Below are positions 4,208-51,212 of a DNA stretch of 64,000 bases, one piece after another. The number at the start of each line of letters is the position of its first letter. Within the stretch, counting starts at the first letter, position 1. The position numbers and the translations under genes are program-made. Under the pieces are notes generated by a model. The model saw nothing but the letters and a program-made list of their open reading frames with translations, had not been told where the DNA came from and ran no database searches. The DNA comes from Lepidodermella squamata (taxonomy: Eukaryota; Animalia; Gastrotricha), in NCBI GenBank assembly GCA_047495785.1, contig JBLDXI010000017.1, forward strand, positions 2,108,001-2,172,000. The letters are read 5' to 3'.

Positions 4208-5318
4208 ATGTTGGATAAAGCGAAGCAGAGAAAATGCGGTATTGTTGGTGTTGCGATTCAATCAGGCCAAACCAAGTTTGGCCCTCAAATGGCTCCTGAG
4301 GCATTCCGTAAAGCTGGTCTTATTGAACGCCTACAAACAATTGGTAATTTATAGTTTTCTATGATATATTCAGTATTGTGCTCAACTTCTTCTTTCTGAA
4401 AGGGCACGAAGTAATTGACTATGGTGACGTGTTTGATGTGGTCACGGAGGAAGACAAGCCTTGGTATCAGGCAAAAAATCCAAAAACCGTTGGAGCAACC
4501 ACAAAAGCTGCATCAAATCTCGTCTTACGGGCTATGGAAGAAAATAATTTGGTCATAAATCTCGGTGGTGATCATGCTATGGCATTGGGAACGTTTCAAG
4601 CTCATCTCAAGAAGAATCCTGATGCCTGTCTATTATGGGTGGATGCTCACGCAGATTTGAACATGCCTTTCACCACACCATCGGGTAATATGCACGGAAT
4701 GCCAGTTGCTTTGCACGTCCGAGAATTGGCCGAAACCGTGTGGATGCCCGAATACTTTGATTGGTTCACTCACCGCACGCATTCCAAAAATGTGGCATAT
4801 CTGGCTCTTCGAGACTTGGATGATGATGAAAGGCGCATAATCAAGCATTTGGGCATTCCTGCCCAGAGTATGCATGATATTGATAAACATGGCATCGCTC
4901 ATTGCCTTAAGAAGTGTCTCGATGTAATTAATCCTGATATGGAAAAGAGCATTCATTTGAGCTTCGATATTGACGCTATCGATCCCACTTTTTGTCCGAG
5001 TACTGGTACACCAGGTAACAATTATTCTAAGCTTTATTACTTGTGATTACATTTATAATTGTTATAGTTCCTGGTGGTCTGTCGATTCGTGAAGGCTTGT
5101 ATATTTGCGAAGAGCTGTATCGAACTGGTATGCTCCGCAGCGTCGATTTGGCGGAGGTTAATCCGACTATTGGTTCTCAAGACGATATCAATCGGACACT
5201 GCATACGGCCATGCTCCTACTAGAAACATGCGCTGGTGATGTGCGTGACTTATCAGTTACTCCTCAGCATTGGCTGAGCAAAGTACAGCCTTCTCCCTTG
5301 AAATCCGCAGGATGGTAA
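4208..5318 (+). CDS. ARG: Arginase, paralog 1 (exons 4208-4343, 4403-5014, 5068-5318)
   Basis: Motifs LGGDH, DAHADLN, SGNMHGMP, SFDIDAIDP and EVNP. Two GT-AG introns restore the frame. Confidence 0.95.
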
Positions 5319-6377: not shown

Positions 6378-7481
6378 ATGAAAACAGAAAATTTGCGAGG
6401 TCGCAAATGCGGAGTTGTTGGCGTCGCAGTCCGCCGAGGCCAAACTAAGAACGGCCCCCAGCTAGCCCCGGAAGCTTTCCGCAAGGCTGGCTTCATTGAT
6501 AGATTGAGGCATCTCGGTCACGACGTCAGCGATTACGGGGATTTGTTCGATGTTGAAGTTCCGCAAAACGAGACCGAGCAGCGTTGGTTCCATGCTAAAC
6601 ACCCTGTTAGCGTTGGCACCACCCAGAAAATGGTCTCCCAAGCTGTAATGAAGTCAATGCAGTCCAATGACTTGACGATTAGCTTGGGCGGCGACCATTC
6701 GATGGCTCTCGGAACGTTTCAAGCTCACTTGAAATCCAACCCTGACAATTGCTGCCTGATCTGGGTCGACGCTCATGCCGATCTCAACCTACCCTTCACC
6801 ACACCATCTGGAAATATGCACGGTATGCCTGTTGGTCTCCATATTCGCGAGCTGGTAAGAAATGAAATAATTGTTCTCATCCCAATATTAAGCTGGATTT
6901 TTTTAAAGGCTGAAGCGATTGAGATGCCGGAATATTTCCAATGGTTTGACAAAAAGATCTCGGCGAAGAACGTCGCGTATCTCGCTCTTCGAGACGTCGA
7001 CGACGATGAGCGAAGAATAATCAAGCATTTGAAAATCCCAGCCTACAGCATGCACGACATTGACAAATACGGCATTGCCTTTTGCTTGAAGAAGTGTCTG
7101 GAAGCTATCAATCCTAACATGGATAAAACCATCCATTTGAGCTTTGACATTGACGCAATCGACCCGGCCGAGTGCCCGAGCACTGGCACCCCAGTCCCCG
7201 GCGGTTTGTCGATCCGCGAGGGTCTGTACATTTGCGAGGAGCTGCACAACACTGGCCTGTTGAAGACGGTTGACCTTGCTGAAGTCAACCCGACTATTGG
7301 CTCGAAAGACGATGTCGACAAAACCCTGCAGGTAGCAATGCTGCTTCTTGAAACATGCGCTGGGGATGTTCGTGATCTGTCCGTCACACCCCAACACTGG
7401 CTTAGCAAAATTGACCGCCCGAATTTCGCCACGCCGATGACCCTTTACAACTCAGAGAAAATCCTTTCCCATGCCCCTTAG
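6378..7481 (+). CDS. ARG: Arginase, paralog 2 (one in-frame 54-nt intron, 6855-6908)
   Basis: Same Mn-binding motifs as paralog 1. The gtaaga...tttaaag insert is absent from paralog 1. AATAAA at ~7546. Confidence 0.95.
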   Translation: MKTENLRGRKCGVVGVAVRRGQTKNGPQLAPEAFRKAGFIDRLRHLGHDVSDYGDLFDVEVPQNETEQRWFHAKHPVSVGTTQKMVSQAVMKSMQSNDLTISLGGDHSMALGTFQAHLKSNPDNCCLIWVDAHADLNLPFTTPSGNMHGMPVGLHIRELVRNEIIVLIPILSWIFLKAEAIEMPEYFQWFDKKISAKNVAYLALRDVDDDERRIIKHLKIPAYSMHDIDKYGIAFCLKKCLEAINPNMDKTIHLSFDIDAIDPAECPSTGTPVPGGLSIREGLYICEELHNTGLLKTVDLAEVNPTIGSKDDVDKTLQVAMLLLETCAGDVRDLSVTPQHWLSKIDRPNFATPMTLYNSEKILSHAP

Positions 7482-11602: not shown

Positions 11603-12275
11603 GAAATTTTAAAACAAGTTGACTTTATTCGTAAAATTACCCGGAATTGAAGCAAACGACAACTGAGTTACTACAGTGGTACGAACAACAGCGGGCTGAT
11701 TATTATTACGCTCGAATTGTTTATTCTTCCCATGCATGTGATGCACATTATGTGCTGTGTGCTGGCTGGCTATTGTAATCGCGTGAAAGTCCACGTGAAA
11801 ATGCCCGCTGCTTTTTTTTCCTATGGACCTTTGATCGCGAGATAGCACTATATTTTTTCATGCACCGGCTTATTTCTTATTTGAACTAGAAAAATGATAT
11901 AAGTAATTTACCTTCTTAGGATCATCTTTACCGACTTCAGCGTACTCAAATTAAGGGTCCAGACACAACCGCTAATGGCAATTAGAGTCTCGTTAGCCGT
12001 AATAAAGCTCATCAGACGGAACGTGTTTACAACAAGATGAAACACGTGATTTAATTAGCTTGGAAAGTCGGGACATTGATGTGATTTTTTTGTTCCTCCT
12101 TAAACTGTGTTAACCACCTTAAAAATTGATGATGTTTATTCGAAGTCTTTTCTAATTTTTTTAAAGTGTAAAAAGTGTAAATGTGAAAGTTTTTGCCGAG
12201 CTTGTATATTGGTGACCAAAAATTGAAGCATAGACGAGAAGAGAGAAGCGGCCTATAATAGGTGAACGCATGAAA

Positions 12276-12825
12276 TCAACTAATTGGACTTTTATTCGTT
12301 TGCAGTTTTCGCCGAAGCCGTCTCGCTTCGATTTGTTGCCAAATGAAAAAAGGTGAATTTTCCTGGCAAATAGGGCGTGATTTGAGCAGTTCCATGCATC
12401 TGGCCAAGTAATTTTCTCTCTCTCGCTGTTGTACGGCATGTAGTAGGCGTCGTAACGCGTGTAGGTCACCCTCTTGTAGTTTATTTCGAACGAAGACATT
12501 CACTGAAATAGAAGGATGGTTAATTGAAAATATACAGATGGGAAATTTGAATCTGAATTTAGAAAATGATTGGCGACCTACATTGAGAATCGTGGGAGTC
12601 TTGTCCTCCTGGTAATTGGTCGTTGGGCGATGGAGCATGGCCTGACCGCAACATCGGGGCAGCTCTATGATCGAGTGACGTCATGATTGATCGCCAATAT
12701 TGGATGTATTTCCGCCTATCGCTTTGCTGGTGTTGTCTCGCGACTACGATTCGAGCGATAACGAACAACAGAAAGGTCGCATAGGCGGACTTTGTTAGTC
12801 CTTTGAATAAGAGTCGAAATTTCAT
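12276..12825 (-). CDS. Small secreted helical protein, tandem family copy A (exons 12825-12582, 12502-12276)
   Basis: Hydrophobic N-terminus and a phase-1 intron. Exon 2: VFVRNKLQEGDLHALRRLLHAVQQRERENYLARCMELLKSRPICQENSPFFIWQQIEARRL. Confidence 0.8.
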
Positions 12826-14489
12826 TTTTGAAATCTACCACTTTAAAATTCTATGAAAAAAATCTGGCATGATACCTTTTGGAGCAAAAATGATAATGTC
12901 ATTGACGCACATAGTCACCTTGATGCATCGAAAGCCGTTATAAATTAGCCTAGGTAAAGTTACAGCGACAAATAACTCTGTTGTTCGCGCAATGTGGATG
13001 ACGTGCATCCGTTGAGATTAGCTCGAGAAAGACTGAATGCTCTTATGCAGTTTATAGATTCTGAAAACTGTCTTGCAAAGTATTGCAGCGCAGTTATTCG
13101 CCAAGATTCCCGAACGTGTATAAGACATTAGAGCCAGCTAATATAAGAAGCAGTATTCGAAGTGCGCAAATTTTTGCCCGACCGGAATTGAGCGATATAG
13201 AAAAAATAAAATTCGCATAAAATGAACGTAGAATTTATCTGACGCTTCTTTACTCTGGGCAGTTGTTGCGATCAATTTTTTGACACGCTCGACTAATTAG
13301 CCGCAAGGTGACCGAGGCTAAAATGTTTACACTGGAAATTACCTATATTCCGAGCTCGGTCAGCTCGAGCCTAAAGATATTTCAGAAAATTAATCGCGGC
13401 TTTTTAATCAGGCCGAGCAGAGCAAAAAAATGCACCTCAGAGTGGCGCCTGTCACTCTGGATGAAAAGACAAATGCTATAGTGTCAATATAGGAACTACA
13501 TCCTGGGCATTCCTGTTAAAATCGGACGGCGTGCGCTATTGTCAATGTCAGGTTGTAGCTATTTATTGAATTTGAGCGTGCGCTAACAGCTTTACTCTGT
13601 CTAAATTTATATTTCTATGATATTCTTCATCAGCAACTTCAAATTGCGGGTTGCCGATGCAAAACATTACCCAACATTTGATTAGTAACAGACATAGCCG
13701 TTAATAGTCGATTAATTCAACGTGGCAAGCATCGCAGCGTTCAAGGTTTAATGAATAGCGCAAATTTCTATTTAACTAATTTTATGCCCCCGCTACGAAG
13801 ATCCTGGCGGTAAATTTTAGCCGTGAACTTGAACACCTTTAATAGGCGTGCGACCGAGCATTCCGAAATTCTTGTCTTATTATTCTAGGAAAAATATGTG
13901 TCTCCATATTAAAAAATATTTAAAGCATTGTTGTTGTTTAATTGGCGGATGGTAATGAGGCATGGTTTAACAATCATGACACCGATTATGAACAGTTTCA
14001 AAGAATGACCTCACTAAAAGGCCTTAAATGACAGGGGCGCTATTAGAAGCGACATATTAACATTTTTTTATTGTGTAAAATGAATTATATAGGTAAATTT
14101 GATAATTATTGGCAAATTTGAAACTTCTGATAAAATATTAGTATAAATTTACAGCTGGACGCCTACTATTACGTTCTCGATTCTCGAGGACCAGGCAATT
14201 TCCCTCATCGAAAGGTCTCGAACACCGTATCGTGGGTACAGTAGATGAAATGTTCACATTTTTACTGGCCGTTAAAAATTTGCAGCCCGGCATCTATCAT
14301 ATATACACCAGGCGTCATAAATCGATCATGCTCAAGATTTACATGAAATGTCTTGGGAATGCGGGCAAAAATCGAAATAACGTAAATGTACTCTGAGTCA
14401 TTACAAGGGACTCGGATTTTCCTTGTAAAAAAAACGTTGCATATTTATTGAAAATAATAATATCTATCAGAATTTAAATCGCCCTAAAT

Positions 14490-14969
14490 TTATCTTGTAT
14501 GCGGTCTGTCCGTAGAAAGTTTAGCTTTTGGCGTGTAGTTGCGGAACATTTTTCTCGCCAAAAAGTTTTGCCAGATGTAAAAGCTCGCAGTTTGAGTCAC
14601 ACAGACCGATCTTGATTTGAAATGCTCCAAGCATCGTTGCATAGCTTCGGCTTTCTCGCGCTTCCTTGCATGGCGCAGCAGCTTGGACAACTGATCGAAT
14701 TCTCGATTTTGCAGCAGTGTTCGAACAAAATCTTCGACTGTAAATAAATAATATAAAAATTCAGCGATTTTTTGTTGACTAAAATTACCTGAAACATTTT
14801 GGTTTTCTCGGCGAAAGTCTTTGTACAACAATTTTACAGTCAAGTAGCCGGCTTCTTTGGACGATTTTGCATCGACTTGAACACTTGAGCATTGATGAAT
14901 TAACGAAATCAGAAATATCGCGATAGGAATCGTGTTCAAGTTAGCCGCGTTTAAAGACAAGGCAAGCAT
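14490..14969 (-). CDS. Small secreted helical protein, copy B (intron 14788-14738)
   Basis: Signal-like IPIAIFLISLIHQCSS. Exon 2: DFVRTLLQNREFDQLSKLLRHARKREKAEAMQRCLEHFKSRSVCVTQTASFYIWQNFLARK. Confidence 0.8.
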   Translation of the reverse strand: MLALSLNAANLNTIPIAIFLISLIHQCSSVQVDAKSSKEAGYLTVKLLYKDFRRENQNVSGNFSQQKIAEFLYYLFTVEDFVRTLLQNREFDQLSKLLRHARKREKAEAMQRCLEHFKSRSVCVTQTASFYIWQNFLARKMFRNYTPKAKLSTDRPHTR

Positions 14970-15835
14970 GTTGTAGTATATCTTCACTAGTTTTCTACGT
15001 ATAATTAATTTTCCGCACTGCCATTGACATTCATTCGATTTTCCTCCTACAACGCCTCTGCACTGCGAGGGAACTGCTTGTATCACGGATGTGTCACGGC
15101 TACAAAACACTGCTTTGGGAGTTCGCCAATGCATTATTTAAACATTTTTCTCCGTCTGGTCCTCTATGATATTACAGCCGCGTCTGCTATATAGATGACA
15201 TTTTAACGCGAAAAACACACGCTTAGGTGCGTTGTCCTAGAAATCAATAAGAACACCATTAAGTGCCTCTCTGTGATCAGGATATGCGTCTATTCAACTG
15301 ATCACCATATAACAACAGTTGGTGTAAAATTTATGCACGCATGAAAAGTATAGATAATCAGTGAAATCATGCCCAAATCTACTCAGCATGTCTTACATGT
15401 GATGGCAAGTAATCGGGACTTCCGAATGTTGATTGGTGACCTAGATAATTTTCTATTTCCTAATTAGTTGTTGGCACGATATCGCGACAAGAAGTCCGGC
15501 TAGATTAATGTCAAATAGATTTTTGTATGCCAACATGTACATTTTGATGATATGATGCTGCTTCCAACAGGAGTCATTTTTCACTTGTGAAAATCACTAA
15601 AAATGAGGTAATCTGAATTCTAACGGACGACTGCGCTTTCTTTAGCAAAAATAAATTAACAAAAAATGGAATAATTTCCATGCAATTTCCCTGTCTTATG
15701 CATTTATGGAGCAGTATTTCGACCTTCTTATTTATTTATTTATTATTAGGAAAACGAATAACGGAGCAGTACAACGTTATGGAGATTCCGAAAATGCTAA
15801 AACATTACGAGCAGCTATTATGAATATGGATAACA

Positions 15836-16376
15836 TTATACATTAGTGTTTCTGGACCACGATTTGCCAGTTGATTTAGATTTTAAAGCCGGTTCATTCC
15901 GGTTCTTTTGATGCGTTTCGCGAAGCCGTTTCGCCTCGATTTGTTGCCAGATGAAAAACGGTGACGTTTGCTTGCATATGGAACGCGATTTGAATTGCTC
16001 GATGCATTTAGCCATGATTTGATCTTTCTCCTTTTGACGGGCGGCTTTCAACATCTCCCGCAGAGAGTCGACATCGCCTTGTTCCAATTTCAGTCGAATA
16101 AATGATGAAACTGCAAAAAAATCAATCAAATTAATTTTAAATTCAAGCTGAATATTTGATCTACTTACTTGAGGTTTTACCAGCCGTGTCGCTTAAAAGG
16201 TGAGGCGATGTAGTGGTTGTCGGCTTTCGATGCTTTGATTTCAGCCCAAGGGAAGCTAACGCATATCGGTTGGAATTTAGAAGGAGGGCAGGGCTCAAGG
16301 AATCGGCCAGCTGAGCGAACGAACAAGGGAAGCTCCACAGAAGAACTGAAACGGATAATAGCTGAGCGAAGAGCAT
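15836..16376 (-). CDS. Small secreted helical protein, copy C (intron 16168-16111)
   Basis: Signal MLFAQLLSVSVLLWSFPCSFA. Exon 2: SFIRLKLEQGDVDSLREMLKAARQKEKDQIMAKCIEQFKSRSICKQTSPFFIWQQIEAKRL. Confidence 0.8.
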
Positions 16377-18233
16377 TTCCAACTGTGTTGTAGTATATAG
16401 CGATTAATTCCTTTCACAGCGACTATAAAATCTAAAGGATATAACAAAACAGGTGAAATCGAAAACTGTTATCGATTCGGTTGTCCAACTCGAGACACGT
16501 GCCAAAAGGCTAAATTTTCTAGATTTTTCCTGGACAGGGGGAGGAGCAGTGAAGCGACGAGTTTGAGTTTATGTTTCCAGAATGCTACTAATGAATCGAT
16601 TTTGAAACTAACATACTGTGCTGTTGGCGAAACATTGTTCAAAAAACAAGATAATATCTAGGTAATCGGACACCGACGTGTTTTCTGCGCGCATTCTCTG
16701 CTTTTGTCTGATTTCCGGGGTTCATGACCTACCTGGAAACCTAAATCGATCATATTAAATCGTATTAAAATGAAAAACGCGAGGTGGAGTAATAAAAAAT
16801 GGTAGATATAAATAGTTGTTTGCTAAATCCCCAAATTAAAATTTCCAATTCCCAAAAGGACCTCGGACCTATTGACGCAGCTATGTACCTAAAATGTGCG
16901 TCAAACGTGGGGAAAAAGTATGACTACGCTACCTCGGCTGTTGATGAAATTCAGGAGAGGTTAAAGGGCTACAGTTTGTTTCGAAAAGACTGGAGGACAG
17001 GGACAGTGACAGGGACATTTTTTAGAAATAAATTGTTATTTTTTCACTTATTTAGCAGTTTTATGACAAACGGTGCACATTCGAAATTTTTGGGACAAAT
17101 TAGTTTTTGCCTGTCCCTTATAAAATACTGTGTTTCCTGCCTAACCAAGCCAGCCTCGGCATGATGTTCGGAAGGAAAACGAAAAAGTGACAAATTCAGC
17201 GAGAAACGGGCGGACGTTGGACGTTAGTTTTTAGCCGCGTCATTTCTCTTAGAGTTGGCAAGCTATTACATTATTTCATAGGATGGTTTCTAGGTCGCCC
17301 GCTTGGTTCCCTATTTTTTGTAAGAAATTTTCGTAAACAACGAGAATTGAATTAAGAATGGGGAATTAATTGCACATGATGGCGCGCGTCTCTTGAAAAG
17401 GCGCGCCTATTTTTATAATTACGTTATTCTAGTTCGGAAAAATTACAACGGCAATATTCGATATAGCGCTCGCGGCCATTACGCGCTTGGTAAGCTCTCA
17501 ATTAGCCTTCCTTATGCGATTTAAAACATCCGACGGGTCACTATTATATGGAAAAAAAACGAATTTCAGCGTAGTATATCGATCTGACCTCCCACGAGAT
17601 CTTTCGGTATATAGGGATTAATCCAATGCAGGCGGATTAAAATAATCGTATATTTTTCATCTAATTGCGAAAACTGATAGTATTTAGTGATAAAAGTGGA
17701 GGTGAAAAAATACTACGCTTTTTCCGAAATTCTGCAAAATGGTCGCTTGCTTGAGAATTTAAACATGTTTGCCTACAACTGTTGTTAGATACGTTCTGTC
17801 TGGGTCTGTCTACCGTGCGTGGTTGTTAGATCTAGGCATAGGTCCTTGAATTGTTTTCCTGTTTACCCCGCGATTGCAAATAACAAAAAATCGCCACTCG
17901 CCACCGGACTATCGCTCGTAAAAAAACATTAAAAGCGATGGCTAGCTTGTTTGGGTCAGCAGTGGGCAAAACAGCCACGCGCTGATGCGGAGGCAGTTTT
18001 TACGTCAAAATTGCGATGGTTTAATGGTCTTCAATCGATAAAACACTCATGGACATTTTCAGCTGATTTTTTGTTGCACCGATCTGAAAATTTTACTGAG
18101 ATGAGCATTGTAGGATAGCTCAATAAAAGTAACAAATAAATTTACTTAAAAATTTCGGAAATTTTTTGAAATTAAAACCACTAATAAGTGCATCATTGGA
18201 TAGTATGAAAAGGTCAGTGAAGTAACGTCATGT

Positions 18234-18655
18234 TCACGCGTTTCCTTCCATGATATTTTTCGCCATGAGTTGCGCCCAGATGTAGAATGAAGTCGAATGC
18301 GTACAGACGGCAACGGAACCGAGTTTTTCAACGCATTTCACTAGCCTTGCACGGTGGTTCTCTTTGCGTATCAGTGCTACAAAATTTTCAAGGGCCTGGT
18401 GATCGCGCCTTTGCACCATATCTGTGATCATCGTTTCTGCAAAAGATAACAGTACGTTAGAGAAACTGGAAAGAAATGCGATGAGAAGAACTTACTGATA
18501 GAGCTTAATTGATGCTGTTTAGCTTCAGCTGAAACTTCCGTTGGCCTATGGCGTTGTAAGCGGATATTCGCACTTTTCTGGCCAAGTTTCAGGCCCTGAG
18601 ATTGTGTCGCCATTGAAACTATGACGAAGCTTAGCAGTAAAATCCAAACATTCAT
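18234..18655 (-). CDS. Small secreted helical protein, copy D (intron 18495-18437)
   Basis: Signal MNVWILLLSFVIVSMATQSQG. Exon 2: MITDMVQRRDHQALENFVALIRKENHRARLVKCVEKLGSVAVCTHSTSFYIWAQLMAK. TATATAA lies ~50 nt upstream. Confidence 0.8.
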
Positions 18656-20689
18656 TGTTTATAATATGGAGTGAGATATTAAATTTCGGGATGTTTTTCC
18701 ACCTTATATATATTCGCTTGCCAATTGCCAAGGACACTCTATATATTCTATGATTGATGGGCATCGACGACGACAGCTTCTCGCGTGGTCACTATTCCAG
18801 ACGACGTCAAGGTTGAACAGACAGACAAGGCTAAGGCCGCAGGGCGACATGTGTTAGCTAACCGTTGAATTCCTACCGCAGGCCTTTATGATCTGTCCAT
18901 TTTTTAGATTCATGCAATTTTCTGCTATTGAGTGTCTGATTTAAATTCATCATGGGTAACGATATGGAACAGTGTTTACTACGAAATTTGACGTATAATT
19001 AAGGCTAGTTTAATCTCGACTAGGAGAAAGCTCAATTTTATTACCTATCGTCAATCAAAAATGATCTCAAAAGTGCAACGGACGAATTAGGCATTGATAG
19101 AAAATTATACACAAACCCGCCATAAATTTTATTAGTGAAAAATATCGTAAAGTTAATTGCGAGCAGTCACTTCATAAAGCTGCGGGGTTCAATCATGCGC
19201 TTCGAAATCAGTTGTGACCACAAAATTAACGACGCTGGCCGGGCACAGATGTCATGAGAACCCATGACTTGCATACATCTCGCCATTTTCGCTTCGTGAT
19301 TGTGACGTCGCAATTCGTCGCCAAATCGCTCGATATCACCGAAGTCGCGCCGCTTTAGCAGCTCTACAATTTTCGCATCTTAACGGAAAATAATTGTATT
19401 CAAAGATTTGTTCGCCTGTTTCTTACTAATTTTGTAGAAAGGAATCGCCTCAATGCTGCCGATATCATTTTTCGATTTTCCAGCGATGATTTGTGCCAAA
19501 TAAAAAATGAGCGATGAACAAACTAATGATTTATTGCAAAATAATGATCTCATTACTAAAATATTGAAAAATTAACTAATTAGGTCCACTGACTGGAGGC
19601 TGAGCATATTATTTTCATTATCATGACAGCGCCATTTCCCAGGCCTATGTCCAGTGGTGAAGATGCGAATGAATTCCCAGATCTCATCTATTTTTCCACT
19701 CATTTGCGTGGACAAGTCCGCTCCTATTTCCTTCTGGTGCCGCCGGGAATGAGGTTTAAATTTATCATCACCAGCCTTGTTCGAATGATTACCGAAGCTT
19801 CGTTAATGATATTGGCCTCATTCAAGACGCTGCGGTCGTTATTATAAATAGGACTTGTCTTAATCAACCAGCCATTTTCGAGACAAAACCGGGCCGTTTT
19901 AGGTGCACTTGTTTCTGTCAAGAACGTTGACAACGTGACAAGATATCGGCATGTCGGAACCGTCTCGCTTCGAAAGGACTTTATGGGATAGGATGAATTG
20001 ATATCAAAGTAAACAAGAAAATTAGGCTGGACAGGGTATAAATCAAAATTTTAGCATTTTTATTTCAAAAAATGAACAACCTTTTTGCACGAAACACGTT
20101 TCATTTTTTTATATTATTACTATCATTATAACAACCTTGATAATACTCGTAAAATTTTCCACACATTTTTTTCATGTCTTCTGGCCAAAACATGATCAAT
20201 CACGTTCGAGTTATGAGCTTAACATTTTTTTTTGTAATCCATAAATGATATTATAAATATAATATTTTTGTTCAACGAATAAAGAGGTATAAATCATATC
20301 GTCAGAGCGCGCGCCGTACAAAAAATTGAAGAACAATTGAAAACGAAAATTGTTATTTACAAAATGACATCCAAAACCATCTATATTATGATATGTATAA
20401 CTCGAAAGCCACAGCCTCAGAGGCGAGACGAAAATCATGACCAAAAAAGGCAGTATCTCAAGCAGAAAACCTGATACAAAAAAATGCCAGCAACAAGAGA
20501 GAGAAATAAATCCGAATCGGCAGTCCGACAGAAATTAAAGCTTCCGATTTCATTGTAATTATTTCTATCGGCGCAGCCGTTGAAAGGATCAGGTAGAAGA
20601 CAGAGATTCGAATAGAAATAATACCATATATATATTTATATATATATTTATATATAGCACTTTGATTTTTCGTTGATATGAACTAATCG

Positions 20690-42769: not shown

Positions 42770-43225
<456 letters not shown>

Positions 43226-43414
43226 TTAGCGAATTGAACCGACAGTGTAATCGAGATTACGCCGCGGAATTTAAAGCCCTACTATAGGTGTCATGTTGTG
43301 AGCGCGTGCTCATTCATAACAGACCAATCCGGCTCGTGTCGCAATCAGGGCGTGACAATATGGCGCTTGAATGGCGGGAAAGGACGCCATAAATACCCCG
43401 GCGATGTGTAGTGA

Positions 43415-43783
<369 letters not shown>

Positions 43784-50194: not shown

Positions 50195-50704
<510 letters not shown>

Positions 50705-50837
50705 CTACTATAGGTGTCATGTTGTGAGCGCGTGCTCATTCATAACAGATCTATCCGGCTCGTGTCGCAATCAGGGCGTGACAATATGGCGCTTGAATGG
50801 CGGGAAAGTGCGCCATAAATACCCCGGCGTTGTCTAG

Positions 50838-51212
<375 letters not shown>

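Follow-up and report, generated by a model that had tools for sequence, protein, structure and literature searches.

Five tandem two-exon genes of the gastrotrich Lepidodermella squamata probably encode a new family of secreted-type proteins

The DNA considered here is a stretch of 64,000 nucleotides from the gastrotrich Lepidodermella squamata (contig JBLDXI010000017.1, positions 2,108,001 to 2,172,000; hereafter the window, in whose own coordinates positions are given), and our subject is a tandem array of five minus-strand genes, copies A to E, located between 12276 and 19553. We consider it likely that these are real genes of a new family of secreted-type proteins, unrelated to the egg-laying hormone (ELH) of Aplysia; this judgement concerns the genes and the family, and leaves any specific function aside. 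The locus would represent one tandem array of a large, unnamed protein family of a single animal lineage. Each gene product would carry a cleavable signal peptide, a fast-evolving and mostly basic or disordered spacer, and, at the C-terminus, a conserved domain of about 65 residues. The proteins would enter the secretory pathway, leaving a mature form, the spacer plus the domain, of about 90-130 aa. Two invariant Cys residues would form one intramolecular disulfide, stapling a compact, cationic helical bundle which presumably works extracellularly, through binding to a partner.

Gene models, transcripts and alleles

The array was initially described from the letters of the DNA alone, without database searches (hereafter the sequence-only reading), as a cluster of four same-strand, two-exon genes. 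All four were recovered, on the minus strand, but a fifth paralogue, copy E, had been missed, as it lies outside the span then considered (12276-18655). The gene models are the following:

Copy A, 12276 to 12825, minus strand: 156 aa; exon 1 (predicted signal peptide and spacer) at 12825-12582, a 79-nt phase-1 intron with the donor GTAGGT, exon 2 at 12502-12276 including the stop codon; 'WQQ' subfamily
Copy B, 14490 to 14969, minus strand: 142 aa; exon 1 at 14969-14789, a 51-nt phase-1 intron, exon 2 at 14737-14490; 'WQQ' subfamily
Copy C, 15836 to 16376, minus strand: 160 aa; exon 1 at 16376-16169, a 58-nt phase-1 intron, exon 2 at 16110-15836; 'WQQ' subfamily
Copy D, 18234 to 18655, minus strand: 120 aa; exon 1 at 18655-18496, a 59-nt phase-1 intron, exon 2 at 18436-18234; 'WAQ' subfamily
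Copy E, 19167 to 19553, minus strand: 112 aa; exon 1 at 19553-19427, a 48-nt phase-1 intron, exon 2 at 19378-19167

The introns of all five copies are in phase 1, have GT..AG ends and measure 48-79 nt, and the single shared intron position described for the first four copies extends to copy E, the five positions agreeing to within one residue in the alignment and falling directly ahead of the conserved domain. This domain of about 65 residues is encoded by exon 2, and two Cys and one Trp residues in it are invariant among the five copies. A hidden Markov model (HMM) of exon 2, run over the 64-kb window, matched exactly copies A to E, with E-values from 1e-31 to 1e-35 (7e-33 for copy A, 2e-31 for copy D and 1e-31 for copy E) and a next best match at 0.16; the profile of 68 family sequences described below also matched five of five (E 3e-17 to 8e-25). 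Copy E is the most divergent and reads L-I-L-W instead of F-Y-I-W. The four C-x9-C strings quoted in the sequence-only reading are exact to the letter; the motif given there for the residues that follow, [ST]-[PS]-F-[FY]-I-W, describes copies A, C and D but not copy B, which reads A-S-F-Y-I-W. Mean Kyte-Doolittle hydropathy in an 11-residue window reaches a maximum of 2.1-3.1 within the first 30 residues of each copy and stays at or below 1.4 elsewhere, in agreement with the signal-peptide-like N-termini proposed earlier. The spacers, also as proposed, cannot be aligned with one another, and the one of copy C includes a T-rich stretch.

Evidence for expression came from a public cDNA-like run (X1), the contigs of which were mapped to positions 13650-19620 together with those of a DNA run from a close relative or strain (X2). 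Over this interval the X1 contigs covered only the exons of copy B (14452-14919) and copy C (15758-16407), a SMART oligonucleotide being present on one of them, and every intergenic bin had zero depth. For copy C, position 16110 is followed directly by 16169 in one X1 contig; the 58 nt skipped, with CT..AC ends that read as GT..AG on the minus strand, coincide with the predicted intron. For copy B, an X1 contig that ends at 14789 runs on into 17 nt ending at 14737, which is the predicted junction. Copies B and C are transcribed and spliced, and the spliced transcripts on which the sequence-only reading had staked its gene models are seen at both junctions. Copy A is probably transcribed too, as 27% of the sampled words of 12260-12840 were present in X1.

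The X2 contigs span the whole of 13650-19620. The X2 allele of copy B carries 12 substitutions in the 429-nt coding sequence, seven of them synonymous and five non-synonymous, and three of the five non-synonymous changes fall in the predicted signal peptide; the 51-nt intron, with seven substitutions and three deleted nucleotides, is far more divergent than the coding sequence. One X2 contig joins 16138 to 16470, skipping 331 nt, a change with which exon 1 of copy C and its promoter would be lost. On its anchor side this junction has only 21 nt, and it may be either an assembly artefact or a deletion allele. Upstream of the genes, copies B and C have in common a 12-nt string, ATATACTACAAC (14970-14985 and 16387-16402), located directly 5' of the start codon in copy B and about 10 nt upstream in copy C. 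A search upstream of A to E for a promoter motif shared by all five genes found none above the level of random controls, and an Rfam scan of the window gave no match.

Relatives, fold and evolution of the family

An exhaustive HMMER search with a profile of the five copies against 1.84 billion representative proteins, which takes up the HMM search proposed in the sequence-only reading, returned 64 relatives at E<=1e-3, and for six of these E was 1e-10 or lower. They are 44-201 aa long and the domain is always C-terminal; in 50 of the 52 members with at least 90 aa the N-terminus includes a strongly hydrophobic segment, and in most of them small residues come next. Names or Pfam domains were found for none of the 64, so that the earlier suggestion of a wholly new family agrees with the outcome of the searches, in which no Pfam, Protein Data Bank (PDB) or named relative appeared. 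Every relative that was looked up comes from ENA metagenome or Logan SRA assemblies, and the sources comprise at least four independent datasets (SAMN13674978, SAMEA6872797, SRR23086389 and SRR31012058). The contigs are animal DNA, the family genes having as neighbours nuclear-receptor zinc fingers, Cys-loop channels, INTS1, RPS2 and G6PD. Restriction of the family to a narrow, poorly sampled animal lineage is supported. Tandem copies occur in the relatives as well, at loci L001 (two to three copies), L006 (two), L007 (two), L008 (three) and L015 (two plus one). The relatives are mostly intronless; one of them, at 11297-11845 of L008, has a phase-1 GTAAGT..AG intron between an exon for the signal peptide and spacer and an exon for the helical domain, which suggests an ancestral intron with repeated loss.

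In an alignment of 68 sequences the two Cys residues are invariant and the Trp nearly so, and the consensus reads R-x3-C-[MLI]-x2-F-x-S-x2-I-C-x-N-x3-5-F-Y-[ILV]-W-[AQ]-Q-x2-A-[KR]-x-[IM]. The two Cys are separated by nine residues in 59 of the 68 sequences and by eight in another eight; in the C-x8-C variants inspected (P0022, P0052 and P0057), a longer loop after the second Cys compensates. Other searches extended neither the family nor its annotation. A word-indexed homology search with copy C found no relatives, no relative could be confirmed in JGI metagenome contigs, which were scanned twice with subfamily alignments, and Pfam scans of the five copies (E<=10) and of the 68 members gave only scattered single matches below threshold. 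A PDB profile search returned designed helical bundles only, at E>0.03, and no literature on secreted CX9C families was found.

AlphaFold2 (AF2), run on exon 2 of copy B with the 68-sequence alignment, gave a model with a predicted local distance difference test score (pLDDT) of 85.8 and a predicted template modelling score (pTM) of 0.63. Its helices cover residues 2-9, 13-39, 42-47 and 54-65, with Cys 35 and Cys 45 flanking the turn between helix 2 and helix 3, and a model from only five sequences agrees with it. The domain is confidently modelled, then, as a small four-helix bundle, and the geometry, together with the invariance of the two Cys, points to one intramolecular disulfide that would staple the helix 2/helix 3 turn. 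It is also basic, with a median net charge of +6 and a median isoelectric point of 9.8 across the family and a charge of +8 to +10 in copies A to C. The fold comparison suggested in the sequence-only reading gave no match above the noise of short helices. With two models as queries, Foldseek against the PDB (E>1), a wide VIA-align search (best Z 5.2) and an Atlas fold search (template modelling (TM) score of about 0.5) returned generic helices only, and ESM Atlas feature searches with copy B and P0004 returned unrelated proteins with scores of 0.87 or less.

A maximum-likelihood tree of 64 domains, of low resolution given the few columns available, placed A, B and C in a 13-member 'W-Q-Q' clade with metagenome proteins (SH-aLRT 94), and D and E in a larger 'W-A-Q' group (support 80). 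The array therefore combines two old subfamilies, one with A-C and one with D-E, both of them older than the divergence from the other organisms, and is not the product of one recent burst. The lineage-specific expansion put forward in the sequence-only reading has to be amended accordingly, the two subfamilies mixed in the array being found in other organisms too. Among the paralogues of the window dN/dS was unusable owing to saturation of the synonymous sites. In the closer paralogue pair L001a/b (dS 0.29-0.52), omega was 0.23 in the domain, against 0.72 in the part comprising the signal peptide and the spacer; the domain is thus under purifying selection.

Descent and possible use of the proteins

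The sequence-only reading had raised the possibility that the family derives from ELH or DH44. The proteins would then be precursors of peptide hormones of the ELH/DH44/CRH type, with the helix of exon 2 as the bioactive peptide acting on a class-B G protein-coupled receptor. The observation behind it is arithmetically correct: copy A shares 11 of 22 residues, without gaps, with the Aplysia ELH sequence quoted there. This count was reached by none of 1000 composition-preserving shuffles, and the Smith-Waterman score of copy A was 47, against 28 +/- 4 for shuffles; in addition, one of the 68 members touched the Pfam CRF model, PF00473, at E 0.08. However, the resemblance is confined to copy A. 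Copies B to E share only 5-8 of the 22 residues, which is the level of the shuffles, and other family members seven or fewer; and the significance of the single pair vanishes once the many known peptides that a reader could recall are counted. The family profile gave ELH 3.5 bits (3.2 when copy A was left out), a score that 122 and 152 of 2000 shuffled ELH sequences, respectively, equalled or bettered. The comparison with shuffles, by which the sequence-only reading had proposed to judge the link, thus goes against it, 6-8% of the shuffles doing as well as ELH itself. None of the five copies matched Pfam ELH or CRF at E<=10, and no ELH model was matched among the 68 members.

The organisation of the proteins also differs from that of the hormone precursors, in which a bioactive peptide of about 36-46 residues is cut out at basic sites and amidated at its C-terminus. 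ELH proper is reported to be a gastropod-restricted branch of DH44, in a family defined by amidated peptide motifs (PMC6425005). The family described here has in common with ELH, DH44 and CRH a signal peptide (a predicted one) followed by a basic amphipathic helix, but it lacks similarity at the level of profiles, and it lacks dibasic excision sites, no such sites being conserved on either side of the helix. The G-K/R amidation signal, already noted as missing in the sequence-only reading, does not follow the helix and is conserved nowhere in the family. The helix continues directly into the Cys-containing part and belongs to a folded domain of 65 residues in which two Cys and one Trp are invariant, and there are dozens of paralogues, as opposed to one or a few genes for the hormones. 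Hence we regard the hormone-precursor explanation as very improbable. The resemblance of copy A to ELH appears to be the chance match of one basic amphipathic helix, and derivation of the family from ELH/DH44/CRH is not supported by the sequence comparisons, which point to a well-documented orphan family with no link to bilaterian neuropeptides.

As to what the proteins do, the use that we favour, tentatively and as the likeliest of those considered, is that of a diversified extracellular repertoire for effector or recognition functions, either of a defence type or binding polyanions or membranes. An effector repertoire is favoured because the family is large, old, arranged in tandem and basic, with a pro-region that evolves freely and without signals for prohormone processing. 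Somewhat less probable, and ranked after effectors, is a new family of extracellular ligands, resembling cytokines, chemokines or pheromones in role, in which each paralogue would bind one member of an expanded receptor family. Small, basic proteins of secreted type with a conserved folded domain, probably stabilised by a disulfide, and tandem arrays of old and diverged subfamilies would suit such ligands; moreover, in a related organism known from metagenomes, Cys-loop receptor genes are found within 10 kb of three of six independent family loci, and an ANF_receptor/7tm_3 gene is close to one. Against this, the receptor genes near these loci share only 25-30% identity with one another and none is found in the present window, and it is more typically in effector repertoires that dozens of diverged paralogues are seen. 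The proximity could be due to chance in a receptor-rich genome. A more specific version, that of an unknown class of disulfide-stapled helical ligands with dozens of genes, co-diversified with expanded receptors for which the adjoining Cys-loop or ANF-receptor/7tm_3 genes would be the candidates, we regard as improbable. It is rather unlikely, if less so than this last version, that the proteins are secretory-gland or structural products (adhesive, egg-envelope, or associated with cuticle or matrix) whose basic domain binds an anionic matrix: the high positive charge, the spacer, variable and of low complexity (as in the T-rich stretch of copy C), and the many tandem copies, which are common for highly expressed secreted products, are in keeping with that role, but repeats and cross-linking motifs are lacking, and the domain is small and globular. 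Finally, the C-x9-C arrangement within a helical hairpin recalls the CHCH-like (CX9C) proteins of the mitochondrial intermembrane space, in which case the N-terminal hydrophobic stretch would not be a secretion signal, and a Cmc1 cluster of the Atlas aligned at a TM score of 0.52/0.48. Yet a TM score of 0.5 is uninformative for a short helical hairpin, and the CHCH fold needs two CX9C motifs, one on each helix of a hairpin, whereas the family has one. Eight of the 68 members have C-x8-C instead, and the helix is interrupted between the two Cys in the AF2 model. The N-terminal hydrophobic signal present in 50 of the 52 full-length members is absent from twin-CX9C proteins, which enter mitochondria by the Mia40 pathway, and no member of the 68 matched the CHCH, Cmc1 or COX17 models of Pfam. 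Of all the explanations weighed here, a mitochondrial one is the least probable.

Several points weigh against the interpretation of the array as genes for secreted, disulfide-stapled proteins that serve as effectors. X1 coverage over copies D and E is zero. Secretion is deduced from hydropathy and from small residues at positions -3 and -1 of the putative cleavage site, and the choice among effector, ligand and structural product turns on the size of the family, its charge and its evolutionary pattern. The disulfide may be intermolecular, giving a dimer. In addition, the conserved hydrophobic core argues for a folded domain over a classic linear antimicrobial peptide.

Chemokines and other small cationic secreted proteins resemble the family, as it is pictured here, in having basic, disulfide-stabilised mature domains of about 70-130 aa, encoded in fast-diversifying tandem clusters in which constraint is concentrated in one folded domain; the analogy is functional, since the fold is entirely different (all-helical in the present family) and there is no homology. 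The water-borne pheromones attractin, of Aplysia, and Er, of Euplotes, are small, secreted, helical and disulfide-stabilised, as the members of this family would be. They differ in having three disulfides and unrelated sequences, and the PDB sequence and fold searches returned nothing similar. The twin-CX9C proteins Cmc1 and COX17 share C-x9-C in a helix-turn-helix context and a weak structural resemblance (TM score of about 0.5), and differ in their location, the mitochondrial intermembrane space as against the presumably extracellular one of the family described here, which has a single CX9C, a predicted N-terminal signal peptide and no profile match to them.

The loci close to receptor genes in the related metagenome organism are L001 2954-4015, L004 6388-8388 and 11550-11784, and L015 1090-2475; all three carry members of the 'WQQ' type.

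Surroundings of the array and implications

Beyond the array, the window is collinear, from 20690 to 41912, with the metagenome contigs L012-L014 (ERZ23486787, ERZ27333047 and ERZ23486764). The genes shared encode Rtf1/Plus3, ISCU, a TLC protein, Ric-8, an ML protein, a WAP-like protein and a transmembrane mucin-like protein, at 44-82% protein identity. Collinearity with L012 stops where the array starts and no family member is found at that position in the relative, so that the position of the array is not conserved. The corresponding place in L012 (18759-21488) is occupied by two paralogous orphan genes of about 440 aa with signal-like N-termini, for which there is neither a Pfam match nor a counterpart in the window. 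The Ric-8 of the window has one relative in the same metagenomes, at 50% identity, whereas its best named homologues, from fish and insects, are only 28-29% identical; the lineage is therefore poorly represented in annotated genomes.

Microsynteny was also sought through the short-chain dehydrogenase/reductase (SDR) gene that adjoins the family pair of L006, and was rejected, as the two SDR proteins are only 26% identical. Upstream of the SDR gene of the window lie tandem arginase-like paralogues, at 4378-5046 and 6378-7481. At the other side of the array, near-identical divergent pairs of histone H3/H4 genes (42770-43783 and 50195-51212) flank a trypsin-ankyrin block at 44.5-50 kb, an arrangement that hints at either a segmental duplication or a histone repeat of the dispersed type.

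Judged against curated resources, the sequence and apparent fold of the family are new, but the kind of family that it represents is an ordinary one. Although the family is expressed, under selection and confidently folded in the models, neither Pfam nor the PDB contains it, and no named protein in a collection of 15 billion sequences belongs to it. Two-exon genes such as these are split by standard open reading frame tracks, and missed or mislabelled by gene callers, and a family profile combined with correct two-exon models would lead to a better annotation of this lineage. If the proteins do turn out to be ligands or defence effectors, an unstudied extracellular system would open up.

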